NCBI GenBank assembly: GCA_965644265.1 | Contig: OZ286464.1 | Coordinates: forward strand, 100,440,001-100,504,000 | DNA length: 64,000 bases | Origin: Glycera tridactyla | Lineage: Eukaryota | Direction of reading: 5' to 3' | Shown here: piece by piece, positions 2,618 to 59,857 of the stretch | Position numbering within the stretch: position 1 is the first letter of the stretch | How the letters are laid out: every line of letters starts with the position of its first letter | Made by a program: the position numbers and the translations under genes | The notes under the pieces: generated by a model | Databases searched by the model: none | What the model saw: the letters and a program-made list of their open reading frames with translations, nothing else | What the model was told of the DNA's origin: nothing

Positions 2618-2945
2618 ATGAGCAGAAAATGGCCTCACCCTCTTCTGCTGGCACTACTGTCTTCAGCTTCCCTTACATCTTGTTTCAATGAGCAATATTT
2701 CCAGATGATTGATGGAATTGAAGGCAAGTTACCAAAGCAGTCATTGATGGAGGGTCGTTTAATTCAGGAGAGGATTGTCCGAGCACCAGAAGAATGTGCT
2801 CTCAGATGCATAAACTACCCTCTCTGTCTATCATTCGAGGTTATCCCTTCATCTGAAGGTTGGTCATGTCGTCTCCTTGACAACATGGTGCTACATCCAG
2901 ATCTATTGACACATCAGGTTGAAGGAGCCATGTACTTCCACAAAG
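2618..2945 (+). CDS. Gene A exon 1: signal peptide + PAN/Apple domain
   Basis: MSRKWPHPLLLALLSSASLTSC leader; C-x3-C..CLSF..WSCRL cysteine pattern; donor AAAG|GTGAGT at 2946 (phase 1); 328 nt, same as gene B exon 1. Confidence 0.9.
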
Positions 2946-3289
2946 GTGAGTTGTTTATTGTTTTATGGATTTTCTGCTGCACTACAACATAGGATATACA
3001 TTTCTTATCGGACTTTGAAGCTTTTGCTCTACTAATGATGGACAGAAGGAGTTGTGCCTTGGGTTGTTATTCCCATATATCACAGCCAGGTAGGAACCAT
3101 AAAAAACGGACAAAATAATCACTAAATCACCCACACAATCACACACTCAATCACTCTACTCATTCTTTATTCTTTTCATTCATTCTTCCATTTATTCGTC
3201 CATCCATCCATCCATCCATCCATCTATTCATCGATATATCTATCTGTCCATTCTCCATCGATGTTCATCTCACCAAAGTTGTTGCATTT

Positions 3290-4200
3290 TTGAACACATC
3301 AAGACTTTCCAACTCAGTTGTTGTAAAGACGACTAAAGCAATTAGTTTTGAGATGAATCTTATTTATTGAAAGATTATACTCATGCAAAATATCCATTTA
3401 GATGCCCAATATGGCCGAGAATGGTGGTGGTTCATCTGATGGTCAATCACAAGTTATAACAAACCCATCCTCTGAATTTCATTCCTGTCTAGATGGCCTC
3501 TCAGACACCCCGCCATCTGTCCAAGCTCATAGAAGTATCAGACCTTATGGGGATAAAAGCACTTGACTGATCATTCTAAAAAGCGTTCTAGCACGGAGTC
3601 AGTGGTGCTTGGCAGTCTCTCTGCTTGGCAGTCCCTGTGCTTGGCTTGGGAGGACCCTTCAAGGGACATTCCCTATCCTCTGCATAACAATTCAATTGAA
3701 CTTGGGGTCTCCACCTTGTGTCCAAGTACTCAAGGTTGTCTTGGATTTATCATGAGGTATGATCATCTCGAAAACCCACAGCGATGATAACATTCGGGAT
3801 ATATGATAACGATAAGAATGGAATGGGGTGAGAGTATTTCACGTGATTCTCTCGGCGTGTAAAACTGTTCATTTGAATATATTATCTCCTCACCCAGGTC
3901 ATGTCATCTGCAACATGCTAGTCCATGGACTATTTCCCTGTCAAACTCAAATATCTGAGAAAAGTTACTCAAATCTTAATTGATGACTTTGAATCATGTA
4001 TTCATCACTGGTTCCCATGTGTTTTGATGAATTTTCACGTTTCATTGATGGATCATATATTTTGAATGGAATATCGTATGTCATCTAGCGAATGGAGGCG
4101 GAGTATCATTTCCACTGGTTCCAACAGGTGTCACTCTTAGCAATAGGCACCTCACTGAATGGCAGTGATGTCTATAGCAGGAAGATCCATTCATCTCATT
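3290..4200 (-). pseudogene. Decayed NACHT/NLR-like relic in gene A intron 1
   Basis: One minus frame reads, with stops, IVHGL..EILSPHSILIVIIYP..CGFS..ETPSSIELLC..RLPSTTDSVLERFLE..YELGQMA..QRMGLL. This order matches Walker B, sensor 1, PxxxxxxC helix and winged helix. DNA homology to 23150-23600 and 25380-25530. Confidence 0.5.
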
Positions 4201-4410
4201 TACTTCATAATTTTCATCCCTCGAAGTTGGTGAATAGATGAAGAGAAACGTGATTTCCAGGAACAGTCTGCATGGTATGCATGATTATGTACCACCCTGC
4301 TGCCATCAGGATGAGGTTTGGATCAATTTTTCTTTGGGCATCTCGACTCCCAGGAATCACGTGAAATGAATATATCAAAGATAAATACTGTTATTCGTGA
4401 AGCCAGAAAA

Positions 4411-4895
4411 CCACAAAGAATACAACAAAATCAGAAGAGAAAACAAAACCATTCTTCGAGATTCATTTTTTCAGAACAATGATTGTCTAGACTGCTGACT
4501 GAATAAGTCAGTAACTATTCTGTAATTCCACAAAATAAGATGGGGAAGTGCCCTGGTAGGAGTTCTCTATTCTTTAGCCGATACATTTTTATGAAGCAAA
4601 ATTGAGATCCACCACAAAGAATACAAACAAATCAGAAGAGAAAACGAAACATTTCTCAAGATTCTATTTTCAGAACAATGATTTTCTAGACTGCTGACTG
4701 AATAAGTCAGTATCTATACTGTATGCACCTGAAAGATTCATACTGTAATCCCGCAAAATAAGATGGGGAGGATCCCTGGCAGGAGTTCTCTATTCTTCAG
4801 CCCATAGATTTTTATGAAGAATACAAAAAATCAGAAGAGAAAACAAAACCATTTTTCAAGATTCTTTTCTTTTTCAGAAGACTGATTTCCTAGAC
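4411..4895. repeat. ~200-bp tandem repeat, ~2.4 copies
   Basis: aagaatac...atcagaagagaaaac recurs near 4417, 4617 and 4817. Confidence 0.85.
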
Positions 4896-5182
4896 CATGT
4901 TCTAGAACAAAACCATGAATTCATTCTTAGAAAATCCTGCCTGAGTTAAAGAGACGTCTAGCCCTATTCAATCATTTAGTCAATCCAATTGGGGGCATCA
5001 GTAGTTCTGGGTATGTAGGTATGATTCTTGATCTCTGTTTGAAATTAATCACCCACTAGCGAAAGCTTACATGATTGTTTTCCCATGTTTCTGATGTTCA
5101 TCCTGATTCTAATCACAATATTCGGGTTAATCCATGTAGTAAATGTCTACAAACACCTGTCCTGGTTTGTTCTGATTGACAG

Positions 5183-5322
5183 CTATTCCTGAATATGTAG
5201 CTTATGGCTGCTATGAGCATACTAACCCTTCCTTGCTGAAATATGTCGAAAACTTGAGAACAGGGCCTAACATGCAATCAGAGTGGGCACCATATTTAAT
5301 CACATTGGACTATCTTACTCAG
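5183..5322 (+). CDS. Gene A exon 2: WSC-like domain, N-terminal half
   Basis: acag|CT acceptor, (A)IPEYVAYGCY..VENLR..W..YLTQ, CAG|GTGAGT donor; 140 nt, phase 1 to phase 0. Confidence 0.9.
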
Positions 5323-5469
5323 GTGAGTGTGAAGAAATGGACCGCTCATTGGTTCCTAGATATGTGGGCAAACGTCCTTGTGAGAAGGGCAGAGCAGGCA
5401 AAGACAGACAGTGATACAGAAAAAACAGAGACAGACAGACAAACACTGACTGCCTGAGTGACAGATATG

Positions 5470-5730
5470 CAGCAAGAACAAAGCCATGATAAACGAAAAT
5501 TGACCTACTTTGAAATGATTTGTCGAGACAATTCACAATGTTTTTACAACTATCCTAGTAGTCTTGATCATCTGATGGATTCAGTGGCTTTGGTCAAAAT
5601 ATTGGGAATCGTCTGAACAACATGTTCCATGGTAGATCAAATTCTGTCCATCATGGATCATCTTTGATTCAAGAACAATATAGCAAGACTAAGTGGCACC
5701 TCACTGACTGGCTGTGATGTCTTCGGCCTC
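5470..5730 (-). pseudogene. Short NACHT-like relic fragment in gene A intron 2
   Basis: gcacctcactga.tggc.gtgatgtct shared with ~4145-4175; minus reading DKSFQSRSIFVYHGF (Walker B-like). Confidence 0.35.
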
Positions 5731-7169
5731 ATGACATTCGGCGAAATGCGGACCAAGTTTGGTAATGCGTTATTACTTCACGGGCATTTAGTCTTGCTTT
5801 TATCACATGGATTGAGTAATAATATGGATTTTGGAGAGGAGCTGGCGGCGAACAATGACAAAGCCTGGCAATACAAGTGGCAGGGTCAGTGAAGCGCTGG
5901 TTCTTGTGCGAAAGTCGGCGGCATTATTGACACTGAATTTAGCCTTCCCTAGTGAAAAGAGATATACAAACAGTACACCTGATAGAAGCACAGCATTCTG
6001 AGAGGATGACTGGAGTATTCGTGAGACACAGGAAATTGTATCATGAAAGCCACGAAGGCAGGGGCTACATTCTTGGGCAAAGTACTACTTTTATGGTGGA
6101 GGACACCCAATAATCTGCACACTTGTGACCTGGTGACGTGGTCACGTCCAGACGGGTAGCTTGACGCGCAAGGTACTGCAAAAAGAAAGGTGTCAAATAT
6201 TAATTTATCATGAATATCGAGCATGTCAGGGGACAAATCATCACCAAGAACAATCGCTGGATACTATTGACTACTTTCACCTTAGTCCAGGCTCGTAGGG
6301 GAGGAATCACGCAGATTCTTCTAAAAGCGTGAAATTTGGCACAGAGGTAGCCTAGGACATAATAATTGCATTTCTGATGGGCGCCCGAGACGGCGCCCAC
6401 TGGGGCTGCCATATTGGCCAAATCCAATATGGCCGCCAGTAGCTACTCCATTTTCTCATAGCTTCAAAATCAAACACTGCAGAATCACCAATGAAGGCTC
6501 TTTTCATACAGTTTCCATCCCAAGGATTCCAAATCTGAACAGTACTTTGACATGGAAGTAGAAATTTTCCTCACAGGGGCTGCCATACTGGAAAATCCGA
6601 TATGGCTGCCGGTCACTCTTTGATTCCCCATAGCTTCCAAACAAAATATCGTAGAATCATGAGTGACGGCTCTTTGTATACATTCTCAACTCCAATGAAT
6701 CAAAATCTGAACAGTATTTTGACATGAAAGTTATACAGATATAACAGTTAAAACAGCTAGTACATTGATATGTCTTATATAGCTGTCAGTCACTATTTGT
6801 TCTCCAATCAAATCCAAATGGAACAATGTGTGATTATGGATGAGGCCTCTTTTAAATAGGACTCTGACTTAACATATGTCAACTATGAAGTCAAATTGAA
6901 GTCAGGATTCGGGATGAAGTGATGTTTTCCTTCAATAGGAAAGATTTTCTTAGGAATGCTTTGACAAATAATCTTGCTATCAAAAAGTAAAAGAACTAAA
7001 CATAGGCATGAATCTCAATTATACATTGAACATGGTCATGTGTATTCTGTAAGGGTCATCATTGTTCACACATCCACCATCAAATTTGGATATATTTACA
7101 ACCACTTCACCAGGGGATGAAATATATTTTCTTCAAGATTTGTTATCTTTGTTGACATGTCAACCCTGA

Positions 7170-9400
7170 CATTCATATAACCCGGTGCAGCAGATTCCAA
7201 CTCTGATGCATTTACAGTTCCCATTGCAAGACCTTTCACTACCACAATGCAGCAGGATGGAACATGCCTTCAAGTGTTGTCCAGTGTGGTGACCAGGTAC
7301 CATTGCCTCCCTTCTGCCACCCTATTCTGTGAAGTCAAGAATTTTCTGATAAACTGAAGTTGCCTGATTCCAGCAAAAGCATGCATGAAGCAATGCCCTC
7401 TTCAAGCATTTAAACAATTCTGCTTGGTCAGGTTGTATATTCCCCATAGTATTTTCATCACAATGTCTGGCTCCATTGACCTTAGCTAGACCACACTCCT
7501 TAACTTCCAGTTTCACACCCAGTGACAGAGATTTGTGTGGGCCCAGCCTTGGAGAAAGATCATATAGATGAAAACATCATGGCGTTTCTTTCCATTTCCT
7601 GAAGAGATCAAAAGGTCTTCAAGACCAAGTGTTGGAAAGAAGCAGATGGCAAGAACCACCACAACACTCTCATTAGTTTGACTAAATGCAATCTGGTGGC
7701 CGTGTGTTGCAGTATGTGTCAGATGGAAGAATATCCTTGCATCTGCATCAGAATGGATGTAGGGCTAGAGAGTTGACAGGTTACATGGTCTGCTAGAAAG
7801 AAAACTCTCCAATTTTGTGCTAAGAAGGAGTACCCCACCTAGATCTATCTTCAAAATCTCCTCAATGAGGAAGACAAATAGTTCCTTTTTGTTTTTTTCA
7901 TTGTTTTTCAGGACTCCACTGTTCCAGGCATTTTTGGGGATTAGTGTGTGACCATGCCATATCCTTGTCTGTAGTCCTGTACTATGTCACTGGTGTTGGA
8001 CTTTAGGTCATCTTCAGATTAATTGTCCCATATAGCATCAATCCATACAAATATCTAGGTCATTTGAGACTTCTGGGATGGTACCATGTGTTGTGTGACA
8101 TACTCAGTTAATGTCCTTGCTGATGTGGGTTGAACATGAGCCACAGGTGCCATATCTAGCTCAACAATTTAGGCTAATCTGGCTGGCGCTGCATGACCAA
8201 TTGGTGTTTCGATACATTCTGGAATGTCAGACACACTGCCAGATCGATGAGTACCAAGATCTGCCAAACTTGGTGGTTTATTTGGTTTTGAGAGCAAAAG
8301 AATTCCTTTATATCCGCATAATGTTTTGACTGTAGTGAAAGGAGAGTTCTGTTATTTTTCTTCTGCATTCCATCTGCTGAGTTTCCTCTTTTTGTAAATA
8401 TAGGACAATTCACAAATGTGATAATCTTATTGCATTTGATTGTGGCCCAGTTGGCTTGTCCAGCACTTGTTAGATGCACTGTGCATGAAGGTCTTGCCTA
8501 CTCCACTGACCTGAGAAAATGAGTTAACTGTTTAGTGCCGCAAGCTCAGAACGACTAGCAAAAGAATTTGCAAACTATTCAACAATCTCAACACTCGACT
8601 GCTCAATGCTTTGCTGCCTGCTCATGATGGACTGAAGTTGAATCTGGTGTGTCTGAGACAGCTTCAAACTCTTCAATACACCACAAGCAATCAGGACCTG
8701 TCAACATGAAGAGTATGAATGCCTTAGGATTCTCATACATCCCAACTGCTTTACCATGTGCCTGAAGACACTTATTGGACTGTTTATGTGACTGGTTCCA
8801 ATAAGGCTGAATTGGTGAGGTGATAGCTAAATCATGCCTCGCACATGAATAGGCAGTCATTGGGCATAGTTAGTGTGGTCCATCACATGAAACCATGGGC
8901 AGAGCTCTTCATATACTTCGATATAATGAAGAAAGTCTCCTTCACATAACAACCTAATGGTTTGTGACTCTTGTGGTCCATGGACATTAGAACAACAGCT
9001 GAAATATTTGCTTGAGGAGGAAATGTAAATGTAAATGTAAATGGAAATGTTGAGGTTTTAGGTCCACTTTCTGCACTTGAATAGACTAAATCAGACCACC
9101 TGCCAAGGAGGAGCGAAGATGAAGGGTGAAACGTTCCTGCATGGTAGGACCGGGGATTGAACCCCAGACCCATTGCACGCCGGCCCAGCACGCTACCACT
9201 GAGCCACCAAGGCAGGCTTTTGCTTGAGGAGGTGGAGAGATATGGCAGATACCTGGTGAGTATAACATGTATGCTCCATATAATGCTCATTAAGAACTGA
9301 CTGAGCCTAACTCGATGTTAGGACCTCTGCCTGAGAAAGCACTGTGGTGCTGCCTGAATCACACAACTTTCAAATCATGTGATGATATTTGTCTTTGATA
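7170..9400 (-). pseudogene. Academ-type transposase relic
   Basis: Fragments DHTNYAQ*LPIHVR, NQSHKQSNK..GKAVGMYENPKA..GPD..IEEFE, LKRALLHACFCWNQ..E*GWQK..WSPHWTTL, and a Cys-rich C-terminus (SCNGNCKCIRVGICC); many stops and frameshifts. Confidence 0.7.
9021..9218 (-). mobile_element. tRNA-derived SINE nested in the transposon
   Basis: Minus strand: A box TGGCTCAGTGG, B box GGTTCAATCCC, (CATTTA)n tail; 14-bp TSD TTTGCTTGAGGAGG (9007-9020, 9219-9232). Confidence 0.92.
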
Positions 9401-10678
9401 GGCAATGCTTCCATCATTAGAACCAATTTATATTCTCCTACAATACCTGGAAATATCCATTGCAATTGCACTGCTATGGCACAAATGGGCTGATATGCAT
9501 GAGGAACACCAGGCTGACCTGGATTCAGGAACTCACTATCCTGCAAAGTGATAAGCATGGCATGGTTCATCATAGTAGGAGAAGCTGCTTTGTCTGAAGA
9601 GTGGGAAAAACTCCTATCACTGCTTCTGGCTTCAAGAATACCTCATCTTTTCAAGTTTCATCCCTATTCAACCCACTGTCCCTTGAATCTTATATTATGT
9701 ATTACTAACCAATATGGGTGCAATCCATGTACCAGCCTTCCAAGCCTTATTTTAGGAAATAATTTGGAATGGCCGATCTTGAGATGCAAAGTGTGGCCAT
9801 ATTGGATCTGCCAAAATGGCAGCCCCTGAAAGTGAAATTTGCCAAATTTCTAATTTTATGTCAAAGTGGCGGCCATATTGGATTTGCCAGTATGGCAGCC
9901 CCTGTAAGGAAAATTTCTACTTCCATGTCAAAGTAGTCAAGCTATGAGAAAATGAAGTAGTGACTGGCAGCCATATTGGATTTGGCCAATATGGCATCCC
10001 CAGTGGGCGCCATCTCTGGCGCCCATCAGAAATTGAATAAGTATGTCCCAGGCTACCTCTGTGCCAAATTTCAAGCTTTTAGACAAATCTGCGCGATACC
10101 CCCCTGTGGGTCCCTAAGAGCCTGGACTACCTTACATTTAAATGTGTTTCATCCATGGAACTCCGAGAAATCGATGTTGAATCGAACCATTGAATGCTGC
10201 CATTTGCCAGCTGTCATTCGTTCACATTACGAGCGTGTGTGTGAGATTCTATTCTAACATTGATTCAAACTTTGCTCTATTAGCTTCAAATTGCTAGTTT
10301 ATGATACACATAGGGCATTTTCCATACAAATTCCGTGTTTGCTAGGCTGTGCAGGCATTGAAAAATGGGAACTACGTTTCGAGACAGTTTGTTTTCATTC
10401 GACACGACGACAGTGACAGCAAACAAGTAAATGTGTACTTACCTGCCCCCCCCCCCCCCCCAGCAGTAATGAGAAACATGAAAAATGCTTTTTTTCACTC
10501 ACTTATTGTGATAGAACACATTCACTGGTGCATTTGTTGAGAAATAAAATGCCTATCACAAGCGCCAACATAAATCTTGTTCGAGCTATTCCACTGTTTT
10601 AATGGTGCCAACTCACGGTGATGATTTGCTGAGTGCAACATGGTGCCTGCATGACAGAGCTTGCTGCTTGTTCGACAG

Positions 10679-10813
10679 ATGGGTGTCACAATGGCAAGTG
10701 CGCAAGGTTATGATCTGATGGGTGTGGACCTGAGCATGTGGACCACAAGCTCGGGCTGTGTGAGGGACGTTGGTGAACAAAACCACATCTACCTGCTGGG
10801 GGTAGATTCCTGA
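10679..10813 (+). CDS. Gene A exon 3: shortened WSC-like C-terminal half
   Basis: acag|ATG acceptor; MGVTMASAQGYDLMGVD..GCVRDVG..IYLLGVDS*; homologous to 37483-37659 with a 42-nt in-frame deletion. Confidence 0.8.
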   Translation: MGVTMASAQGYDLMGVDLSMWTTSSGCVRDVGEQNHIYLLGVDS

Positions 10814-11856
10814 ACTTTGAATGGCTTATAATGAAAATGCAAATGTAGCAGTTTATGTTCATGATCTGCTACCCTTAGCAAGTTCAGTTGCCTTTCAAAT
10901 TACATCCCTTGGCAGGTCATTTCAAACATTAGCCTCCCTCATCTCCGTGGAATGTATGCAACCATAAATACAGAATTGACTGCCTGGGCTAAGCACACCA
11001 CAATCATCATCACCGCCTATTGCCAAGAAATATCCATTCACACCTGGATAAATTTGACTGGGGAAGTACGGCTGTTCCACCTGCTTATCTTTACACAGTA
11101 GTGGCTCTTCGATGGGAGGCACAGATCATACAAATCTGCTTCATGTTGCAGGCCCAGTATTGAATGGTGAACCATGTTCATTTTAGTCACCCATTCAAGT
11201 AGGATGCCTTGCTCATAGTTGTGAACAATATTCTTTACTTGAGGGCTGAGTCTCAAAGACATTGAAAGACTGTGATATTGGGCTCTGAGAAATGGCTAAT
11301 GTCTGTCATTCCAAATTGTATGGCTTCATTTTCCGTATGAACATCGTCAAATACCATCAAGTTGATAAACAATTCACTGACTCTGTTGACATCTCTGACA
11401 CCTGTTATGTGATTACGATTATTGTATTTCTTCCACAAGGAGGGTGTTAGGTAAAATACATCAGTTGTCTAAGCGAGCGTATCCTTAAGTTTCATTGTAT
11501 TGGATATAGCTTCCGACTACATGAGGTAGAGCTACGCCATGTTATATCACTGTAATGTTCATTCGTTTTCTAATGTAATTCGCCTGTTTAACACTGTGAT
11601 GATACACTAATGAGCCGGGAGATGTGTTCAAGATGCACCTCATGAACAATATGCAGCCTTAAATGCAGAAAGGACCGAAACAACATACGGATCGAAACAA
11701 CACGCATCATCTTCTTGATTGAGATTCATCTAAGAGAAGTGATTCTACCATCAGCACTGTTGGATGCCGATATTTCAGCCACCACCATCAACACCGCCGT
11801 ATCTTTTGAGAAACATGCATTTTAATGATGCTCACGTGATTTTCGTGCAAATAAAT

Positions 11857-12984
11857 GTCTGATTAAGATTGTATCTTGCATTTATCAGCACACTGTGAAT
11901 CGCTAGCTACACATCTTACAGACGTTATATGGCCTTGTCATTACTGGGCTGTCTGATCAATATTGTAACTTGCATTTATCAGCACACTGTGAATCGCTAG
12001 CTACTCATCTTAGAGACTTTATATGGCCTTGTCATTACTGGGCTGTCTGATCAAGATTTTATCTTGCATTTATCAGCACACTGTGAATCGCTAGCTACTC
12101 ATCTTACAGACGTTATATGGCCTTGTCATTACTGGGCTGTCTGATCAATATTGTAACTTGCATTTATCAGCACACTGTGAATCGCTAGCTACTCATCTTA
12201 GAGACTTTATATGGCCTTGTCATTACTGGGCTGTCTGATCAATATTGTAACTTGCATTTATCAGCACACTGTGAATCGCTAGCTACTCATCTTAGAGACT
12301 TTATATGGCCTTGTCATTACTGGGCTGTCTGATCAAGATTTTATCTTGCATTTATCAGCACACTGTGAATCGCTAGCTACTCATCTTACAGACGTTATAT
12401 GGCCTTGTCATTACTGGGCTGTCTGATCAATATTGTAACTTGCATTTATCAGCACACTGTGAATCGCTAGCTACTCATCTTAGAGACTGTATATGGCCTT
12501 GTCATTACTGGGCTGTCTGATCAAGATTTTATCTTGCATTTATCAGCACACTGTGAATCGCTAGCTACTCATCTTACAGACGTTATATGGCCTTGTCATT
12601 ACTGGGCTGTCTGATCAATATTGTATCTCCCATTTATCAGCACACTGTGAATCGCTAGCTACTCATCTTACAGACTTTATATGGCCTTGTCATTACTGGG
12701 CTGTCTGATCAAGATTGTATCTCCCATTTATCAGCACACTGTGAATCGCTAGCTACTCATCTTACAGACTTAATATGGCCTTGTCATTACTGGGCTGTCT
12801 GATCAAGATTGTATCTCCAATTTATCAGCACACTGTGAATCGCTAGCTACTCATCATACAGACTGTATATGGCCTTGTCATTACTGGACTGTCTGATCAA
12901 GATTGTAACTTGCATTTATCAGCACACTGTGAATCGCTAGCTACTCATCATACAGACTTTATATGGCCTTGTCATAATTGGGCT
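11857..12984. repeat. 94-bp minisatellite, ~12 copies
   Basis: ttgcatttatcagcacactgtgaatcgctagc recurs at 11876, 11970, 12064 and onward. Confidence 0.97.
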
Positions 12985-37954: not shown

Positions 37955-39633
37955 CCACTAATACTGCTAGAAATGGAGATGGACTATTATACTGCTAGAA
38001 ATGAAGATAGACCACTAATACTGCTAGAAATGAAGATAGACCACTAATACTGCTAGAAATGAAGATGGACCATTATACTGCTAGAAATGAAGATAGACCA
38101 CTAATACTGCTAGAAATGAAGATAGACCACTAATACTGCTAGAAATGAAGATGGACCATTATATTGCTAGAAATGAAGATAGACCACTGATACTGCTAGA
38201 AAGGAAGATGGACCACTAATACTGCTAGAAATGAAGATAGACCACTAATACTGCTAGAAATGAAGATGGACCATTATACTGCTAGAAATGAAGATGGACC
38301 ACTAATACTGCTAGAAATGAAGATGGATCATTATACTGCTAGAAATGAAGATGGACCACTAATACTGCTAGAAATGAAGATGGATCATTATACTGCTAGT
38401 AACGAAGATGGACCACTAATACTGCTAGAAATGAAGATGGATCATTATACTGCTAGTAACGAAGATGGACCACTAATACTGCTAGAAATGAAGATAGACC
38501 ACAAATACTGCTAGAAATGAAGATGGACCATTATATTGCTAGAAATGATGATAGACGACTGATACTGCTAGAAATGAAGATAGACCACTAATACTGCTAG
38601 AAATGAAGATAGACCACTAATACTGCTAGAAATGAAGATGGACCATTATACTGCTAGAAATGAAGATGGACCACTAATACTGCTAGAAATGAAGATGGAT
38701 CATTATACTGCTAGTAACGAAGATGGACCACTAATACTGCTAGAAATGAAGATGGACCATTATATTGCTAGAAATGATGATAGACGACTGATACTGCTAG
38801 AAATGAAGATGGTCCACTAATACTGCTAGAAATGAAGTTGGACCATTATACTGCTAGTAATGAAGATAGACCACTAATACTGCTAGAAACGAAGATGGAC
38901 CACTAATACTGCTAGGAATGAAGATGGACCATTATACTGCTAGAAATGAAAATAGACCACTGATACTGCTAGAAATGAAGATGGTCCACTAATACTGCTA
39001 GAAATGAAGGTGATCCACTAATACTGCTAGAAATGAAGATGGACCACTAATACTGTCAGAAATGAAGATGGACCACTGATACTGTCAGAAATGAAGATGG
39101 ACCACAAACAGGAATGAAGATGAACCACTAATACTGTCAGAAATGAAGATGGACCACTGATACTGTCAGAAATGAAGATGGTCCACACACAGGAATGAAG
39201 ATGGACCACTAATGCTGTCAGAAATGAAGATGGACCACAAACAGGAATGGAGATGAACCACTCATACTGTCAGAAATGAAGATGGACCACTGATACTGTC
39301 AGAAATGAAGATGGACCACAAATAGGAATGAAGATGAACCACTAATACTGTCAGAAATGAAGATGGACCACAAACAGGAATGGAGATGAACCACTAATAC
39401 TGTCAGGAATGAAGATGGACCACAAACAGGAATGGAGATGAACCACTAATACTGTCAGAAATGAAGACGGACCACTAATGCTGTCAGAAATGAAGATGGA
39501 CCACAAACAGGAATTGAGATGGACCACTAATGCTGTCAGAAATGAAGATGGACCACAAACAGGAATTGAGATGGACCACTAATGCTGTCAGAAATGAATA
39601 TGGACCACACACAGAAATGAAGATGGACCATTA
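37955..39633. repeat. 28/29-bp minisatellite with 57-bp dimers and a variant distal half
   Basis: ctaatactgctagaaatgaagatagacca / ttatactgctagaaatgaagatggacca; ctgtcagaaatg and caaacaggaat variants appear after ~39050. Confidence 0.96.
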
Positions 39634-39934: not shown

Positions 39935-39974
<40 letters not shown>

Positions 39975-39999
39975 ACACACACACACACACACATACACA
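39932..39999. repeat. (CA)n microsatellite
   Basis: Direct reading of the sequence. Confidence 0.97.
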
Positions 40000-43053: not shown

Positions 43054-43210
43054 NNNNNNNNNNNNNNNNNNNNNNNNNNNNNNNNNNNNNNNNNNNNNNN
43101 NNNNNNNNNNNNNNNNNNNNNNNNNNNNNNNNNNNNNNNNNNNNNNNNNNNNNNNNNNNNNNNNNNNNNNNNNNNNNNNNNNNNNNNNNNNNNNNNNNNN
43201 NNNNNNNNNN
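43054..43210. other. Assembly gap
   Basis: Run of N. Confidence 1.
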
Positions 43211-45384: not shown

Positions 45385-45536
45385 NNNNNNNNNNNNNNNN
45401 NNNNNNNNNNNNNNNNNNNNNNNNNNNNNNNNNNNNNNNNNNNNNNNNNNNNNNNNNNNNNNNNNNNNNNNNNNNNNNNNNNNNNNNNNNNNNNNNNNNN
45501 NNNNNNNNNNNNNNNNNNNNNNNNNNNNNNNNNNNN
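45385..45536. other. Assembly gap
   Basis: Run of N. Confidence 1.
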
Positions 45537-46176: not shown

Positions 46177-48621
46177 TCAGGTGATTGGATGCATGGCAAA
46201 AAATTTCTTCAGCCCTCGCTTGAAGGCTGCTATGGAGGGACACTCACGTAGTGCCACCGGACAGATATTCCAGAGCTGGGCACCTCTTATCAGTGTGTTT
46301 CCAGCTGCAAACTGGGTACGTGTGCGGATTACCTCCAAATCTTGTTGTACAGTTTGCCTAGTGACTCGCTGAGAGACCTCTGAACGCATGTGTAAGCCAT
46401 ATACAACATGACCTCCTCCGATTTTATTCACTACCTTATAAATTTCGCACAGCAGGTGCCTTTGGCGCAGTGTCTCCAGGTAAGGAAGTTTCAAAGTGAT
46501 GTGACACTCGCTGGCAGAATAACCCAGAGGGTTATTCCTTACCACCCTGAGGCAGCGGTTTTGTAGCATCTGCAGCTTATGTTTAGCCTGTGCCGTCATA
46601 CTCTCATAGATAAAATCATTATAACAGAGCATTGATTGAATTAGTGAATGGTATATGAAGAGGGCACGTTGTTGGCTCAAGTAGGGCCTGAGGTGGGACA
46701 GAGCGGAACGCCGGCATGTCACTTTCTGAACCAAGTAGTTGGCATGTTTGTCAAAGCTAAGCCCACAGTCAAGAACTAAGCCCAGGTATTTGTAATGGTC
46801 AACCTTACAGATACGCTTATCATTAAATAATAGGCCTTGCATACTAATACGCTGAGACTGTTGACGGGTGCCGAAGATCATCAAGGATGACTTTTCAACG
46901 TTCAGGGAAAGTTTCATGAAACTGAACCACTTTGCAACAAGATCAAGGTCAACCTGCAGTCTACGAATTAGTTCCTCCTCATTATTTGCACTTGCACATA
47001 TGGCCGTGTCTTCAGCATATAGGAATGCCCTAGTGTTCTCAAGAATGTTTGGGAGCTCATTAATATAGAGCGTGAAGAGCAGAGGCCCCAGGACAGAGCC
47101 CTGGGGCACTCCGCATGTCACCTTGTGCTTCATCGAGATTATGTTTTCAAACTTGGTTGACTGCGTGCGGTCACTCAGATAGGAGGCGAACCATGAAACA
47201 GCACTGTTTCGAAATCCCAACTCGCGCAATCTCTCAAGTAGTTTCTGATGATCCACCGTGTCAAACGCCTTCTTCAGATCCAGGAAGAGCACTCCAGTGG
47301 GACGAGCCTGATCAGCCTCCCGGTAGATGTTATCCAGGAAGCTGGTGAGGCATGTCCCAGTTGAGTAACCCTCCCTGAATCCAAATTGGGCGTCCGACAG
47401 AATTTTGTTCCTCGACAAATATGCATAGGTTTGAGAGTGGGCAACTTTCTCCATTACTTTTCCCAGAACTGGTAAGATTGATATCGGGCGGAAGTTACTA
47501 ATTCCCAGATTACTGCCACCTTTGTATATAATGGTGATTACTCCCTCCTTCCAGTCTGCCGGAAAAGTTTGGGTGCGTATGGAAAAGTTGCATAGATGAC
47601 ATATGGCAAAAACAATGTTGTTGGGGACCCATTTCAGAAAACTAGAAGTGATGCAGTCCCTGCCAGCTGATTCTGTCTTCTTCAGGTTCTTAATAATCTC
47701 ATGGATTGATTCAGGGGTTGTCTCCACTAGTTCAAAGACGGGGGGCCGCATATGGATATTTAGAATGGGATTCTGTGTGTCGGGAATCTTATCTGCTAAT
47801 TCACTCCCTATGGTACTAAAGAAATTATTGACTTCTTCAGCACAGTCAGTGTGTGTCTTAGCCTCTAGTTTGGGCGACTGCACAGAAGACTTCTGTAGTG
47901 GCCATATTTTCTTCAAGGCTCTCCACAGCTTTTTAGGATCGTCACTGTGTCGTTCAACAGTATTGTCCACGTGATCCTTGATGAGTCTCCTTTTAAGAGC
48001 GCATTTACGACGGATGGCTTCCTTTTTCAAGGCTAGGTTCATATCGGAGGGATATTTATCTTGGAGTTTTGACCGATACTCCACCAGGTCTATCATGCTT
48101 AGATATTCATTGTCAACCCAGGGCTGCGTTTCCTCCCTGAATGATTTCACCTTTGTTGGGGCATGACGGTCGATACAGGCACCAATTGTCGCTTCGAGAT
48201 TCCGGACTGCCAAATCGAGGTTAGTCGCATCAAGAACTGATGTTAGATCTATTGACGCTAAGTCATGAATGTAATCGTTTCGCACAAAATTCCTATAACT
48301 GCGATATTTTATGTTTTTCCATGTTTTAGGTATCTTATTGCGATTTCGGCAGACAAAAGCAAGGGCATGGTCACTCAGACCTGGGTTGACTACGCCAGAC
48401 CTGTTGTAATATTCAGGATTTGAGACTACAATATGATCAATAACGGTCGAACTTGTGGTGGTTACGCGGGTGGGAGTGTCTATCAGCTGAGAGAGAGCCC
48501 TCTCGCGGAGAAATGCTTTGTAAGAGTTAGTGCGATCACGGCGAGTACTACAGAAGTCGATGGTAATATCTCCTAAGATGTTGAGGTCAAAGACACTAAA
48601 GTTCTCATCAAGGAAGTCCAT
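46177..48621 (-). CDS. LINE ORF2 (APE C-terminal part + reverse transcriptase), 814 aa
   Basis: SDHAL, NFRPISIL, QFGFR, FLDLKKAFDTVDH, GVPQGSVLGP, YAEDT (catalytic YADD altered), YKYLG. Confidence 0.92.
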   Translation of the reverse strand: MDFLDENFSVFDLNILGDITIDFCSTRRDRTNSYKAFLRERALSQLIDTPTRVTTTSSTVIDHIVVSNPEYYNRSGVVNPGLSDHALAFVCRNRNKIPKTWKNIKYRSYRNFVRNDYIHDLASIDLTSVLDATNLDLAVRNLEATIGACIDRHAPTKVKSFREETQPWVDNEYLSMIDLVEYRSKLQDKYPSDMNLALKKEAIRRKCALKRRLIKDHVDNTVERHSDDPKKLWRALKKIWPLQKSSVQSPKLEAKTHTDCAEEVNNFFSTIGSELADKIPDTQNPILNIHMRPPVFELVETTPESIHEIIKNLKKTESAGRDCITSSFLKWVPNNIVFAICHLCNFSIRTQTFPADWKEGVITIIYKGGSNLGISNFRPISILPVLGKVMEKVAHSQTYAYLSRNKILSDAQFGFREGYSTGTCLTSFLDNIYREADQARPTGVLFLDLKKAFDTVDHQKLLERLRELGFRNSAVSWFASYLSDRTQSTKFENIISMKHKVTCGVPQGSVLGPLLFTLYINELPNILENTRAFLYAEDTAICASANNEEELIRRLQVDLDLVAKWFSFMKLSLNVEKSSLMIFGTRQQSQRISMQGLLFNDKRICKVDHYKYLGLVLDCGLSFDKHANYLVQKVTCRRSALSHLRPYLSQQRALFIYHSLIQSMLCYNDFIYESMTAQAKHKLQMLQNRCLRVVRNNPLGYSASECHITLKLPYLETLRQRHLLCEIYKVVNKIGGGHVVYGLHMRSEVSQRVTRQTVQQDLEVIRTRTQFAAGNTLIRGAQLWNICPVALRECPSIAAFKRGLKKFFAMHPIT

Positions 48622-50217: not shown

Positions 50218-50360
50218 AATAAAGCATTTTCAAGCACCTAAACCTAAACCTAAACCTGCCAGATAGGTATTGACGTAAATCAAAATAAAGCATTTTCAAG
50301 CACCTAAACCTAAACCTAAACCTAAACCTAAACCTGCCAGATAGGTATTGACGTAAATCA
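50218..50360. repeat. Two tandem units containing (CCTAAA)n tracts
   Basis: aataaagcattttcaagca(cctaaa)n cctgccagataggtattgacgtaaatca twice, with n=3 and n=5. Confidence 0.9.
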
Positions 50361-52378: not shown

Positions 52379-52692
52379 GTAGTTGATTCACTTTAACTAG
52401 ACCTTCTCGTTGTAGTAGCGTCTACGGCTACACTTCCACCAGTCCATCACGACCGGCAGGATATCGCTCAATAGTGTGAATTTTCCATCGTCATTGAGAT
52501 GGATATTATCATTGGCCATGAAAGCGCTTATCACATCTTTGCGTTCGTCCGACGCTGGATAGTATAGAGACTTGGTATACAATTGGCGGGTACAGTGGGA
52601 CTTTTTCAGTGTGGCGTACATATGGTAGTCAAGCCATTTCGCTACCTGCATTGCATCACTACACCACCATGATCTGCGAAGAATAGGCACAA

Positions 52693-53758
52693 CTCACAGC
52701 TTGGTTGTAGTCACCCCAGATATGTCATGTAGTCGAGGGTAGGTACCCTCACAGCTTGGTTGTGGTCGCCCCAGATATGTCATGTAGTCGAGGGTGGGTA
52801 CCCTCACAGCTTGGTTGTGGTCGCCCCAGATATGTCATGTAGTCGAGGGTAGGTACCCTCACACCTTGGTTGTAGTCACCCCAGATATGTCATGTAGTCG
52901 AGGGTAGGTACCCTCACAGCTTGGTTGTGGTCGCCCCAGATATGTCATGTAGTCGAGGGTAGGTACCCTCACACCTTGGTTGTAGTCACCCCAGATATGT
53001 CATGTAGTCGAGGGTAGGTACCCTCACAGCTTGGTTGTGGTCGCCCCAGATGTGTCATGTAGTCGAGAGTAGGTACCCTCACAGCTTGGTTGTGGTCGCC
53101 CCAGATATGTCATGTAGTCGAGGGTAGGTACCCTCACAGCTTGGTTGGGGTCGCCCCAGATGTGTCATGTAGTCGAGGGTAGGTATCCTCACAGCTTGGT
53201 TGTAGTCACCCCAGATATGTCATGTAGTCGAGGGTAGGTACCCTCACAGCTTGGCTGTGGTCGCCCCAGATATGTCATGTAGTCGAGGGTAGGTACCCTC
53301 ACACCTTGGTTGTAGTCACCCCAGATATGTCATGTAGTCAAGGGTAGGTACCCTCACAGCTTGGTTGTGGTCGCCCCAGATATGTCATGTAGTCGAGGGT
53401 AGGTACCCTCACACCTTGGTTGTAGTCACCCCAGATATGTCATGTAGTCGAGGGTATGTACCCTCACAGCTTGGCTGTGGTCGCCCCAGATATGTCATGT
53501 AGTCGAGGGTAGGTACCCTCACACCTTGGTTGTAGTCACCCCAGATATGTCATGTAGTCAAGGGTAGGTACCCTCACAGCTTGGTTGTGGTCGCCCCAGA
53601 TATGTCATGTAGTCGAGGGTAGGTACCCTCACACCTTGGTTGTAGTCACCCCAGATATGTCATGTAGTCGAGGGTAGGTACCCTCACAGCTTGGCTGTGG
53701 TCGCCCCAGATATGTCATGTAGTCGAGGGTAGGTACCCTCACAGCTTGGTTGTGGTCG
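52693..53758. repeat. 55-bp minisatellite, ~19 copies (unrelated to the 25.7-kb unit)
   Basis: Unit cccagatatgtcatgtagtcgagggtaggtaccctcacagcttggttgtggtcgc. Confidence 0.97.
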
Positions 53759-54330
53759 TCCATCCAAGGACGAGCAGCAGCGACAGGCCTTGTATTCATC
53801 AGGCAGCAACGAGGAGGTACCTTGAAGCAAGCACACATAGGACGACAGACTCACTGATCGTGTCTAATATTGGTTTTTGTTTGTTCACAGATGGCATGAG
53901 TTGAGAGTATACAGCCTGTTGAGGAACAATATGCTTTGAGACAAAACGTCAAGATGGGTTCATTCATGAAAAGCAACCTTAATATGCATCACGCAATAGA
54001 TAGCAACAAGGATATCCTGTTTGATAACCCGTCAATATCTACGTAGATATCACCCGTAGGCCCTGATTCTCACGGAAACGCCCGGAAGCAAACAGTGAAA
54101 TTGATATTAGGCTATACTGAAAACAAGTGAGCAATGATGCTGTAATTATGTTATAGCAGTACAGGGAGATTATGTGATTTGTCAACACAGATGTTAGTTC
54201 CTCCCGGAAGTAGTTTTCCATTATGTATGGTTGCATCCAACTATGCAAATACTGTCGCCCAGTACACGCTGGTCTGATCCTTCACAAGAGAGCCCAGTCT
54301 TCTGACTGCTGGCTTTTGAAGAGGGCGAAT

Positions 54331-54661
54331 ATGAGTGAGATGCATACAGCGCTATTTCTTCTCACATTACTATGTCCTGCCTCAGTTTTGCATGGTCTTG
54401 ATCATGGATACTTCCAAATGATTGATGGTATGTCGGGCAAGTTACCGGAGCAGTCGTTGATGGAAGGCCGTCTCATTCTTGAGAGGACTGTCCAAACTTT
54501 ATTAGAATGTGCCTCCGGATGCATCAGCCACGCCCTGTGTGTATCATTTGAGGTTATCCCCCATCAAAATGGAGGATGGTCGTGTCGCCTCCTTGACAAC
54601 ATGGTGCTCCATCCAGATCTATTGACACATCAGCTAGAAGGAGCCATATACTTCCACAAAG
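54331..54661 (+). CDS. Gene C exon 1: signal peptide + PAN/Apple domain
   Basis: MSEMHTALFLLTLLCPASVLHG leader; same four PAN cysteines; donor AAAG|GTAGGT; 331 nt (one extra codon). Confidence 0.88.
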
Positions 54662-55599
54662 GTAGGTCAACATACACTATTATACCATATCTCCTCTACC
54701 TCGACAGGGCAATTCCAGATAATTACTTTTAACTATGAGCCTTTCTTCCATAAAAATGACCAAGAAGAGCAACATATTTTTGTATCATTGCAATTGGAGA
54801 AAAGTATGGGGCACACAGAAACCTAGATGAATAAAGATAAATTGACTCTAATATCATGTGCCTTTCATCCATGGTGGTAAGACACAGGGTGAACTTTCAT
54901 CATCTGTGTCGTCATCACCATTAGGTCATTCACAAATCGCATGAGTTAAGAGCACGCAATGCAGCTTGTCTAGGAGGCTATACTGAGCATATCCCACCAG
55001 TTATCACTTTGGGAAATCGTCAAAACGAGTTCATTCATGAAAAGCAACTTAATTCTATCATAAAAGTGACAAAATGGATAGGTACAAGTTGATTATGATG
55101 ATACACACGCAGAGTATATGGGACAGCCATTATCATTATATTGGGAGACGTGGCAAAACGTCTGTCCTGGAGGCCGATATGCGGATTTATTTATTTATTT
55201 ATTTATCTATCCATTCATTTATTCATTTATTCATCTATTAATTCATTTATTTATCTATTCATTTACCTATCTATTTATTTATTCATTTAATCATTTATTT
55301 ATCCATCCATCGAAGTCCAATTCCAAAGAATGCATGATATATTGAGATATCACGAGTTCTGCATGTTCGGCTGTCGGCGACCTATTGAAACTAAGATGCA
55401 TTGCTCTCAGGATTCTTTCATATTTGAAGCACCTTATTTTCAAGCTGTGTCAGGACCACCTGAAGATGATTCGGATAATAGGGTTCCAGGAGTACCTGCC
55501 TTTTTGGTTGCTTCCATAGAGATCCTGGTTCAAGGTGATTCAAAATTGTCATCAAAATATAAGAAGGATAATTCCCTCTCTCCTCTCAATGGGTTTTGA

Positions 55600-58500
55600 G
55601 ATTACCCTGACAGGATACATTAACTGATAGGGTCCATCTGTAAGCAATCTTCCATGTAATGGATTCCCTAGAAATTGCAGGTCTCAAACGGAGGAGAAAG
55701 ATTATTTTGTAGGCTTACAAAATGGGGTTTCAATTGGTTGGTATATCTATTGGTGTTCTTATTGTCACTTCAAAACTAAATTATATCATTGAGTGTATTT
55801 CTTCAATGAATTTTTGTTATCCTTCGTATTCATGTGGGAGCATACTCCTCAGGCTCGTGCTCTACAAATTGGAGTCTGAACTTTATGCTATGGTTACTCC
55901 TAAGATGAATGAATATAAATCCATGGTATAGAGTTTCACATCTCAAGGGAAAGCACAGGGGCGGGAAAGATTGTGGCTTCTGGATATGCATAGAATGTTC
56001 TCATGGGGGCTGTTTTCTGTCCTTCATATATATTGTTTGATACCGATATTCCATGTGAAGCAGGATTCAAGATTACTGGAAATGTCGGGAATATCAAATA
56101 TATGGAATTTCAACATATAAGTAATAGTCTCTTCTTATGTTTGTATTTGTTGACATTCCAATATTGAAGAAAGAAATCTATGAGAATGTTCAAAATAATC
56201 ACTACCTCGAATTATCCTCCATGGGTTTTCACCTTATTCCGATACCAATTTGCGATGCTAGGGTGAAAAAATGCTCCCCTTTTGGCCTTGACAGTTTTCA
56301 GTACCGTGTCAAATTGGCATTTCAGCGAATAGCCTTTCTTTAGCATTACCACCACTACTTCTATTAGCCATTATATAGCCAATAAGCATCAATCAATTGA
56401 AAAGAAGTAGATTATGCCTGGCATCATCAGGAGATATTTCTATCTTTGTGCATGTATGGCTGTCAGCCAGGTAGCCAAGTAAACGTATAGTAGACACCAA
56501 CCGATATGAATCATACATTTGTAAGTGTTTTTTATTTGTTTGTGCTTCAACAGCATGTGTGAGCCAAGATGTTTATGTATCCCGTGAGCTCCTCATAAAA
56601 CTAACTGTTCTGTGTCCTGCAGGCATCAATTCACAGACCCTGAGCACATGATGATGGGGACCTGAAAGGATGTCAAGTGGAAGTGGCTGGGGGTTCAGAC
56701 ACACCTCTGCTTACTGAACATAACTTCATAAACCTATATCACATCAAAATCTGTAATAGACTGGAAGCTATCATTTAAGCATGATGGCAATGCAGTGCAG
56801 CATTGGGTTCGCAGAATAGTGTTCATTTGTGTTCAATTTTGAACTGCTCCAAACCAACTTTACAATTATGCCGTACAATGCCGTCACACAACCTATTCGT
56901 AGCCCGAGTAACCCAAAACTGGCGTGACTGGTGTGCACTTTCTGCCTATTGACAATATCCACCACAGGCAAACCGTCCGTGACTTACACCTGAGACCATT
57001 TCACTGAAGAAATAAGAAAGAGGAGCTCAAGAGGTATAGAGAAGAGGTGACAGAAGAAACCTGGTGATAGTTTTATCCTGGTAGAGAAAGCCTGGACACA
57101 GATGACAACAAACTTCGAATATGTTCCCAACACCAAGAGCTATTGGGATAAAAGAGAAGGGATGATGCTACACCTAGGCCAGATCATCCCCCATGACCAC
57201 CCTTCAGAATAAACGTCCCAACGTCCATTGGCGACTACCATCAATAGAGACCCTGGATTGCCACCCTGAACATACACATGTAATTGGACAAGACAGACCT
57301 GACGTATGCAGTGCACACATCATATGCAAGGACAAAGCCTTTGTTGTAGCCTACATACCTGGCCGACTATTTGATCAAGGTAGACTGATGTAGGCGACGA
57401 CGGATGCAACAACAAAATTGACTGCCCAGGGAGACTCCTTTAGACAGATAAGCAAGGTCAGCAAACTGGCAGTTACCTTCACCCAGTTGCTCTAAAACTC
57501 AATTCTGAAAAAGAATACCAAAATACTTCTGTCCTGTGAAGTACATGTACAAGTGTGATTAGAAGAGACGACCTGCCTCTAACACCAATAAGTATAATGT
57601 GACGAACACACAATGTACGGAAACAGATAAATGATGCACAGCTGTCATTTTCGAACAAGCCGTATGTATCGTGTTCGAATTCGCATGCATATAACCATGT
57701 GCCATCATCTTCAAATCTGTTTCTGGCAAAACTGTCACCAACCGATCTTATCCTATCCGATATTTGAAAAAAAATCGTCCATCGTGGAGATTAAGCAGAC
57801 GGGCAATTGAAGAGATTCAGTCTACTGATTGCCTCGTCTTTGGTACTTATTACCAAACAACACAGCGTTTTTCAGATGATGCCCAAGTACCATAGTCCCC
57901 TCATATTTGCATGAGCAGGTCCTGGTGAGATTTCGCGGCAGGATCAACAAGGGCAATATGTTTAAATTTCATTCATTCTACATGAATCCCTTATTTTATT
58001 CTACTGATATATCATATGTGGACAGTTTATCCGGGCGTTCGGTCAGTCATAGTGCTAGTGATGCGTGTATGGATACGCTAATATTCAGCTATATCACTGG
58101 GGGAAGAGATGAGTGGACGGCATCGGCAGCCAGAAATTGTCGCATTGAAGGCAGTCAGCAACATGTGGGACCATGTCCAAATACCAATCATGCAAGATTC
58201 TATCCGGCAGGTTTGGTCCTCTTGTATATGAGTATTGTGGAGATTGTATGTTCTGGCAGCTAAGACTTAGAATGACCAATAAGATAATTCCACGCCGTCT
58301 TATAGGTCAAGTGATTTATACCATGAACGAACCTGACTTGATATGCTGGCAAGACCTTTGTCAAGGCTGCTAAATTCCATGATCTTAGTGACTTGTTTAC
58401 TCAACTTTTTATTGGTAGACACCAATCCTGTATACGCATCTGATGGTGGACTTTACTGTACACTAGCTCTGTCCCTTGATGTTCCTTCGCTGCGTTGAAG

Positions 58501-58770
58501 ACTAATCCTGTGTACGACAAGCTTTGTATTGACATTAGTATTGTTGTACAATTGAGCTGTTCTGATGAGCTGATCATGGTATGATCCATATATGGAAAGT
58601 ATGGGTGTTTCTGGATTCCTGAACAATGGGCTGACAATATAACTCTTTCAATATGGCGAAATGACATTGAACCACAGCCACTCAACCAACCAACCACCTT
58701 GAATTATCTCATCTGTCCAAAAGACGGCCTTCAATTTTATGTATATTGCTGCTGACTGGGTTCAAATCCT
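55600..58770 (+). pseudogene. Two plus-strand NACHT-like relics in gene C intron 1
   Basis: YLLVFLLSLQN, IHGI (55920-55935, reverse complement of the 25525 motif), PSYILFDTDIP..FKITG; the second unit is collinear with 32550-34650 (MYIAADWV). Confidence 0.4.
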
Positions 58771-59717
58771 GGTTCACACGCTCACCCAAATCCATGAGTT
58801 CATCCCTCGGCAGGCCTACTCAGGCTTGGACCATTCTCATTTCGAGACACTGTGTAACTTCAAGCAATAGATTCATCTTGCTTACCGTCAACAGCCAAGT
58901 CAAGTTCCAAATCCGAACTGACTCAATTCAAGTGGTAAGGTACCGAAGCTCTACATTATACACAGATGTCCATCCCGGGTGATCTCTTTTGGTATGCCAT
59001 CAGTTCTGTCCTCTACAGGAGTCACTCCCACAATCCCTGCATACGAAATGATGGGAACCAGAAACATTGTCAAGTGGTAGTAGCTGACAGTCCAGACACA
59101 CCACTCCCTCTCTTACAAGAACATTGTGAACGTGAAGATGACATATCTGAATTCATCATCCGATATCGAGTCTAGGGTGTAGGTAACCCTGTCGCCTCAC
59201 GAGCAAAATGCACATGTGTTCTTTTGGAACAGAAGACGTATCACCATGGTCACATGATGGGTACACGTCATTGCTGAATTGCCAGAAAACAACCAAGGTC
59301 AAGGGTCAACAGGTACTTTCATAGCATACAGAGAGACGTGGTGACAATAGGCCCATCATACGTTTCGCCATTCTCAATGGGATTTTCAAGCTCTGAAGGT
59401 TTTTGAATTTTGAATTCAATTTGTAGCCACAGGTATTCTTTATAAATGTAACTGGCAGGAAGCTTTCACTCAGGCCTGATAGCAATGCATCATTTTGAGC
59501 CAAGAGTGGTGCTTGTAACAGAGGAAAGCTTCAGGTGTGGGGTGAGAAGGATGGGGGGATCATATAGATTGGTGCACTGGTGAAGGTTTGGTATTCAATC
59601 ATGAACCTTTGAAGCCTTCAGTCACGTTACCTGATAAACACTATTCTGTTCATGTCAGCTGGAGTACAATCATGGACAACTGTTCATAACCCATCTATCC
59701 TCTCCTCTGATTTACAG

Positions 59718-59857
59718 CTGTTCCGGACTTTGAAGAATATGGCTGCTATTCTCAACTTAATCCCATGATGACAGTGATGGTGGAGAACTTCAGAGTGGAT
59801 ACTAATCATCAGATGGTGTGGATGCCATGGCCGTCAGCAATGAATTATATTGCTCAG
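59718..59857 (+). CDS. Gene C exon 2: WSC-like N-terminal half
   Basis: tttacag|CT; (A)VPDFEEYGCYSQLNP..VENFR..PWPSAMNYIAQ; CAG|GTGAGT; 140 nt. Confidence 0.9.

Follow-up and report, generated by a model that had tools for sequence, protein, structure and literature searches.

The window analyzed here, a 64,000-nucleotide (nt) stretch of the 2.04-Gb genome of Glycera tridactyla (G000:C13:100440001-100504000), carries three paralogous genes, designated A, B, and C, each of which consists of three exons on the plus strand and probably encodes a small secreted protein made of two cysteine-containing modules, a PAN/Apple module and a second, WSC-like one. Together with copies lying upstream of the window, they form a tandem family whose features are collected in Table 1. 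Positions outside the window are given as window-equivalent positions, while those labeled "L0xx" are local coordinates of fetched flanking sequences or other loci.

Exon coordinates, splice signals, and intron phases had been proposed for A, B, and C in the original prediction, and all of them were confirmed by translation and by the flanking AG...GT dinucleotides. Every donor is GT and every acceptor AG, with positions and phases identical in the six tandem copies. Exon 1 is 328 nt long (331 nt in C), i.e., 3n+1, and intron 1 is therefore of phase 1, the split codon being GCT or GCC (Ala) in every copy. Exon 2, with 140 nt, ends at a codon boundary, and intron 2 is of phase 0. The phase-1 intron after the PAN exon and the phase-0 intron within the second domain, previously noted for the three window genes, are thus present in all copies. 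The stop codon follows directly after the exon-3 sequence ...LGVEA or a close variant of it. Summed exon by exon, the predicted products of A, B, and C are 200, 214, and 215 amino acids (aa) long, respectively. The first two values are those given earlier, and the minimum of 157 aa then assigned to C becomes a full length through the exon found outside the window.

Table 1. Coordinates of the family genes, related loci, and other features of the window
Feature	Position	Strand	Remarks
A exon 1	2618-2945	+	ATG, signal-peptide-like N terminus, PAN/Apple; phase-1 donor GT
A exon 2	5183-5322	+	Start of WSC-like module (YGCY motif); AG acceptor, GT donor, phase 0
A exon 3	10679-10813	+	Stop TGA; 14-codon in-frame deletion
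B exon 1	22465-22792	+	A-type
B intron 1	22793-35335	+	12.5 kb; free of assembly gaps; putative hybrid junction
B exon 2	35336-35475	+	C-type
B exon 3	37483-37659	+	Stop TAG; C-type; WSC-like core (helix Cys, GECYAG strand, loop Cys)
C exon 1	54331-54661	+	110 full codons plus first base of split Ala codon; most divergent cluster copy
C exon 2	59718-59857	+	Third exon lies outside the window
C exon 3	Window-equivalent 67308-67484 (L023:3308-3484)	+	3.3 kb past the window end
Unlinked family copy	G000:C28:53.35 Mb; L025:3844-4172, L026:5018-5155, L026:6232-6697		Frameshift in exon 1; exon-2 acceptor AG changed to TG
Distant paralog	G000:C13:92.66 Mb (7.8 Mb away); L027:3136-3471, 8152-8289, 9286-9519		31-46% identity; same exon plan
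GIY-YIG endonuclease open reading frame (ORF)	19665-20723	+	Penelope-type retroelement
Reverse-transcriptase (RT)-domain ORF	46177-48621	-	Open over 814 aa; retroelement
Second RT ORF	61755-63128	+	Inside C intron 2
Assembly gap (N run)	21660-22005		A-B spacer; outside all family exons and introns
Assembly gap (N run)	43054-43210		Intergenic, B-C spacer
Assembly gap (N run)	45385-45536		Intergenic, B-C spacer
Assembly gap (N run)	59926-60183		C intron 2, 69 nt past the exon-2 donor

The extent of the family was determined by searching B exon 1 and exon 3 against the own genome and then running tblastn on the fetched flanks. This revealed six tandem three-exon copies on C13, all on the plus strand, with exon 1 starting at window-equivalent positions -44689, -26664, -9207, 2618 (A), 22465 (B), and 54331 (C). 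One of the upstream copies (L018:5000-8400) is compact, its three exons being contained in 2.7 kb. The cluster of three paralogs in the original prediction is therefore present but was undercounted, since three more plus-strand copies precede A. Outside the cluster, an unlinked copy on C28 is a pseudogene because it combines a frameshift in exon 1 with an AG-to-TG change in the exon-2 acceptor; in this pseudogene, the first 14 codons of exon 3 are present three times, 140 to 150 nt apart. In the distant paralog on C13, the last exon runs on beyond the usual family stop and adds a tail of about 25 residues rich in Ser and Pro; this paralog possibly represents an older, stalked form. The family would have grown by tandem duplication combined with recombination within the phase-1 intron.

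That the exons are instead inner parts of larger genes, for example, genes for multi-module PAN proteins, with an incidental ATG and stop, appears highly improbable. The open frame of B does extend 60 codons upstream of the ATG, but all six copies and the C28 relic share the ATG, the hydrophobic leader, and the stop behind ...LGVEA, and the tandem copies lie about 17 to 32 kb apart with retroelements in between. Homologs from a metagenome (see below) likewise begin with Met and a leader.

Comparison of the copies points to coding constraint. Pairwise dN/dS (Nei-Gojobori, calculated exon by exon and pooled) was 0.22 to 0.41 in all 15 pairs, exon 2 being the fastest part with pairwise values of 0.18 to 1.22. 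Among the changes unique to one lineage, the synonymous:non-synonymous ratio was 13:16 in A, 5:3 in B exon 1, and 8:6 in the third upstream copy; the neutral expectation being about 1:2.9, these changes are far from neutral, even in A. Conservation was also consistently higher in the predicted exons than in their flanks: A-type copies share 79 to 93% identity in exons versus 42 to 79% in the 250-nt flanks, and across the A-type/C-type divide the corresponding values are 56 to 73% and 40 to 49%. Alignment of the exons needed only two indels, both in frame (42 nt deleted in A and 3 nt in C), against many gaps in the flanks. The end of exon 1, with its phase-1 donor, is likewise conserved in the metagenome homologs described below. 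On these comparisons, the family genes look real and selectively maintained.

The first exon was previously predicted to encode a PAN/Apple module, and the fold, the arrangement of the cysteines, and weak profile matches all uphold this, with the reservation that Pfam scores fall below the curated cutoff. The Pfam PAN_1 profile matched five of seven copies at E values of ≤1 (best E value, 0.0029) and PAN_4 gave a best E value of 6.6e-4, with no Pfam PAN match for B exon 1. With Atlas language-model features of exon 1, 29 of 30 matches were PAN_1. Four cysteines, Cys60, Cys64, Cys70, and Cys84, are invariant in all seven aligned copies with the spacing C-x3-C-x5-C-x13-C, the last interval being x14 to x16 in C and in the distant paralog owing to extra loop residues. 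These cysteines are predicted to form two nested disulfides joining the helix to the central strand. In an AlphaFold2 (AF2) model built on the paralog alignment, the core (residues 50 to 90) had a predicted local distance difference test (pLDDT) score of 83 to 89 and comprised a strand (47-54), a helix (57-66), and four further strands. When this model was compared with known structures using Foldseek and VIA, the top rows were nearly all apple/PAN domains, with Z scores of 6.0 to 7.0 and a root mean square deviation of 2.5 to 2.8 Å over 58 to 62 residues; with Z below 8, such matches are supportive, not decisive by themselves. They included prekallikrein, factor XI, the Sarcocystis lectin SML-2, TgMIC4, plasminogen, and the HGF N domain from the PDB, as well as the PAN module of a Colletotrichum oxidase (6ryw).

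We accept exon 1 as encoding a minimal PAN/Apple module, preceded by a putative signal peptide. It resembles the PAN/Apple domains of PF00024 (the apple domains of factor XI and prekallikrein, the N domains of HGF and plasminogen, SML-2, and TgMIC4) in its four-cysteine core pattern and in its predicted five-strand sheet around one helix. Apple domains possess, in addition, an outer third disulfide, whereas the family module is a minimal form without it. Moreover, its partner is a WSC-like module, the two making up a protein of about 200 aa; it is neither repeated nor combined with a kringle or protease as in known PAN proteins. The A-type copies have a ninth Cys, residue 22, where the leader ends (window positions 2681-2683 and 22528-22530), and this Cys is missing there in C and in the distant paralog. 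If retained after cleavage, it would be unpaired and could allow disulfide-linked dimers.

Assignment of the second module relies on what is known of the WSC domain. The structure of Wsc1 identifies it as a PAN/Apple fold around which a long loop is wrapped, with eight conserved cysteines in four disulfides (PMC9024836). The core disulfides C49-C69 and C53-C71 are common to PAN, while C27-C86 and C90-C98, the latter around a CGG motif, are WSC specific; aromatic richness has been linked to function in fungal WSC domains (PMC9024836). In our searches, the Pfam WSC profile PF01822 matched seven of eight exon-3 copies at E values of ≤1, exon 2 alone having no Pfam match, and 28 of 30 matches by Atlas features of exon 3 were WSC. 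As a reference, three single-exon WSC domains were taken from a PF01822 scan of the own genome, and hhalign aligned the exon-3 alignment to them with a probability of 70% and an E value of 4e-5 over 40 columns. In this register, the first Cys of exon 3 corresponds to the first helix Cys, GECYAG to GxCYCG, and the last Cys to the loop Cys. The YGCY motif of exon 2 gave a weak but colinear match to the WSC start (E value, 0.03). The Cys of the GCY motif and the loop Cys are both invariant and are placed as the WSC-specific pair that links strand 1 to the loop, suggesting a disulfide of the C27-C86 type between strand 1 and the C-terminal loop. About 17 residues follow the loop Cys, and they include neither another Cys nor a CGG motif; the protein would thus lack the intraloop disulfide. 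Aromatic residues (F, W, and Y) make up 13 to 14% of the module (11% in A).

By these features, exons 2 and 3 are best described as encoding a reduced WSC-like module, not a standard WSC domain. The earlier assignment of the second module to WSC is to be modified in the same sense, the likeness having been borne out and the full domain not. The module shares with the WSC domains of PF01822 (the cysteine-rich domain of yeast Wsc1, the WSC domain of human Kremen1, fungal WSC lectins, and the WSC modules of copper-radical oxidases) the YxGCY start, a helix Cys predicted to be bonded to a G-x-C strand, and a loop Cys placed to pair with the first Cys, together with an aromatic-rich composition, a probable extracellular setting, and weak, consistent profile matches. 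It differs in that the second Cys is missing from both the helix and the CxC pair, as is the C90-C98 loop with its CGG motif, in that it has no transmembrane or enzyme partner, and in that the domain ends so soon after the loop Cys. It would therefore keep one core disulfide, joining the helix to a strand, plus the WSC-specific disulfide from strand to loop, and would have lost the second core bond along with the C90-C98/CGG part. Because WSC is itself a variant of the PAN fold (PMC9024836), the protein is in effect made of two PAN-fold modules.

In an alternative reading, the second module is a very divergent second PAN/Apple module and its likeness to WSC is convergent or trivial. Consistent with this, the module has only four Cys, no CxC pair, and no CGG loop (PMC9024836), its Pfam WSC score, taken exon by exon, stays below the cutoff, and the exon-3 profile found no match among PDB sequences. 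Also, the family intron lies near profile hidden Markov model (HMM) position 28/29, whereas an intron near Pfam position 45 to 47 often interrupts the WSC domains found elsewhere in the genome (28 places, e.g., L032 to L037); this difference indicates that the family module is not a recent copy of one of those domains. Nevertheless, both the profile and the feature searches with exon 3 choose WSC over PAN, and the YxGCY start and loop Cys fit the C27-C86 disulfide that is missing in canonical PAN modules (PMC9024836). We consider a second PAN/Apple module unlikely, and, with WSC being a subtype of the PAN fold, the difference between it and a reduced WSC-like module would be only one of degree.

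Gene A departs from this plan in its last exon, where a 14-codon in-frame deletion has removed the strand ...EFYGECYAGH... and Gly stands in place of the first Cys. A predicted core disulfide has thereby lost its two partners, and no odd Cys is left in the second module of A, which may be impaired since its central strand is also missing. A is possibly a functional variant and possibly a young pseudogene. A rival reading is that part or all of the cluster consists of decaying relics, A being disabled by its deletion and B being two orphan pieces that are never spliced together. The loss of the central strand and of a disulfide pair in A would fit with such decay, and a clear family pseudogene does exist on C28. 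On the other hand, the exons of A and B all remain open, with the start, the stop, and the splice signals kept. The deletion in A preserves the frame and is matched by loss of exactly the partner Cys, and the branch leading to A is still under constraint, as is B exon 1, judging from the synonymous:non-synonymous ratios given above.

The case of B rests on its composite origin. Its exon 1 shares 85 to 88% aa identity with the A-type copies (dS, 0.26 to 0.43) and 64% with C (dS, 0.77), while its exons 2 and 3 share 76 to 83% with C (dS, about 0.2) and 41 to 64% with the others (dS, >1). For exon 2 alone, the identity is 76% to C and 41 to 46% to the other copies. The long first intron follows the same division: its 5' part is homologous to A intron 1 (to about position 24078, and repeated to about 27519), and from 32174 onward it is homologous to C intron 1. 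In the middle lies a duplicated block of 3.4 kb (23128-26508 and 26569-30235) with two arrays of one 55-bp minisatellite unit, and these arrays may have favored unequal recombination. From these sequence relationships, B combines an exon 1 of the A type with exons 2 and 3 of the C type. Most simply, an A-type and a C-type gene would have become joined within their common phase-1 intron, through recombination or a deletion, and the reading frame has been kept because the break lies inside the intron. Hybrid genes of the Lepore type arise by unequal crossing-over in tandem arrays. B is like them in taking its 5' part from one paralog and its 3' part from another, with the break inside an intron; the Lepore type is due to unequal crossing-over, while for B, which is known from sequence only, crossover, deletion, and gene conversion are all possible.

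The same structure can be read as two unconnected remnants, since the two halves of B come from different subfamilies and stand 12.5 kb apart with duplicated minisatellite DNA between them. If so, however, relics of the exons "missing" from each half might be expected nearby, and a search of the long B intron and the spacers found none that was convincing. Along with the intact signals and the evidence of constraint in both genes, this makes it rather improbable that the copies are relics, and we regard B as a hybrid gene.

Relatives of the family were sought in several collections. A profile of the seven exon-1 copies, run by hmmsearch against 1.84 billion representatives, retrieved 15 proteins at E values of ≤1e-3, namely, three metagenome fragments of exon 1 and generic multi-PAN proteins, the weaker matches being of the latter kind. 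Among the matches of this profile in the 1.84 billion representatives, there was no PAN-plus-WSC layout and no named or full-length relative, in agreement with the earlier statement that no named gene was recognized with this architecture. The metagenome homologs are ORFs of 121 to 138 aa on contigs of 0.6 to 1.2 kb from a single environmental metagenome assembly, ERZ23486739 (L029, L030, and L031), and come from a eukaryote. The three differ from one another. They consist of Met, leader, and PAN core up to ...Y(F/Y)(H/Y)(K/T)-G|gt, where the phase-1 donor is that of the family, and continue into the intron; exons 2 and 3 are absent from these three short contigs. A word-index protein search with exon 1 found nothing when the length range was widened to 101 to 322 aa, and neither did one with the exon-3 alignment, for which the range of 32 to 101 aa cannot see full-length kin. 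A literature search retrieved no description of a small animal PAN-plus-WSC protein. So far as the searched collections show, the family is unannotated and narrowly distributed, while both of its module types are known.

A comparable use of the same two module types is found in fungal AA5_2 copper-radical oxidases, in which a PAN_1 or a WSC module, each on its own, sits at the N terminus as a secreted module for glycan-directed targeting (PMC11611005). In those enzymes, the modules are appended to a large catalytic protein, whereas here they form the whole of an animal protein, and there is no sequence kinship beyond the fold.

Secretion of the products is suggested by the leader, whose mean hydrophobicity over 19 residues on the Kyte-Doolittle scale is 1.1 to 1.7 at residues 4 to 5 in five of six copies. 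The leader of B is weaker, the hydrophobicity maximum of its exon 1 (1.29) lying within the PAN core. The leader forms a helix in the AF2 model, and values for exons 2 and 3 never exceed 1.05, in line with the original description of a signal peptide and no transmembrane segment. The proteins are accordingly predicted to be secreted and soluble.

Taken together, these data favor a same-strand tandem family of six three-exon genes encoding secreted proteins of about 190 mature residues with two small disulfide-stabilized PAN-fold modules, a reading to which we assign a probability of roughly 0.7. Exon 1 would supply the signal peptide and the PAN/Apple module, and exons 2 and 3 the aromatic-rich, reduced WSC-like module with its four Cys, corresponding to WSC Cys 1, 2, 4, and 6 (one from exon 2 and three from exon 3). 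Several points weigh against it. The Pfam scores lie below the gathering cutoffs, with A exon 1 reaching 16.1 bits with PAN_1 (PF00024; E value, 0.01) against a gathering cutoff of 21.4 bits, and exon 3 reaching 21.2 bits with WSC (PF01822; E value, 3.4e-4 in B, HMM positions 30 to 69 of 82) against a cutoff of 27.8 bits. The four Cys of the second module compare with eight in the WSC definition. This module was searched exon by exon, and the AF2 model of exon 3 alone, with a pLDDT of 46, was unusable. On the side of the genes, splicing and expression of A, B, and C are predicted from the genomic sequence, as is the splice that would join exon 1 of B to its exon 2 over 12.5 kb. There was no transcript-derived family protein in the large protein collections searched, and in four of the six copies, there was no canonical AATAAA or ATTAAA within 1.5 kb past the stop; TATA boxes were likewise uninformative. 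Finally, the binding function considered below is argued wholly by analogy.

The assembly gaps in the window touch none of the family exons, and no reading frame crosses any of the first three. The end of the gap in the A-B spacer is 460 nt from the ATG of B and only 59 nt from the start of the homology of B with A upstream of the gene; because it stops just short of that homology, the promoter side of B may be incomplete. Similarly, the link between exons 2 and 3 of C crosses unread sequence, since the fourth gap sits in intron 2 of this gene. Further family copies may be hidden inside the N runs.

Besides the retroelement ORFs listed in Table 1, long minisatellite arrays abound in the cluster, at positions 11856-12984, 15390-18893, 25752-26361, 29458-30286, 35751-37032, 37950-39608, and 52693-53758. 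The units measure 94 bp, 69 bp (51 copies, 3.5 kb), 55 bp, 59 bp, and 29 bp, and there is a different 55-bp unit. An Rfam search of the window found no family. A short sequence similar to the central part of exon 1 (GRIIQERL...) occurs upstream of the ATG in two cluster copies, about 360 to 400 nt before it (window 22105-22143 and L018, about 4904-4993), and about 740 nt before it in the C28 copy (L025, 3101-3139). This sequence may have been left by an old partial duplication.

As to function, the original prediction had proposed a bivalent recognition role (immune, mucus, adhesive, or symbiosis). Carbohydrates or proteins are ligands of WSC and PAN modules (PMC9024836; PMC11611005). By analogy, the family products may act as soluble extracellular two-site binders of glycans and/or proteins, in a lectin-like, matrix, mucus, or defense role. 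A more specific proposal, which we put forward as a rather doubtful one, is that the cluster constitutes a fast-diversifying lectin-like recognition repertoire of the lineage, used in defense, mucus, or symbiont handling. Variety would then be generated by tandem duplication, by rapid change of the surface encoded by exon 2 (where pairwise dN/dS reaches 1.2), and by swapping of the PAN exon against WSC-like exons via the common phase-1 intron, as in B, a scheme that we likewise think improbable.

At present, the value of the finding is mainly for annotation. If expressed, the genes would define an unannotated animal family in which a minimal PAN/Apple module and a pared-down WSC-like one are the whole protein. 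The family would offer a small, tractable case of which WSC disulfides and loops are dispensable, its second module being a natural variant with two disulfides and that of A a variant with one, and B would be a clean case of a hybrid gene whose junction formed within a phase-1 intron. In terms of host biology, the family would represent one more of several PAN-based secreted families.

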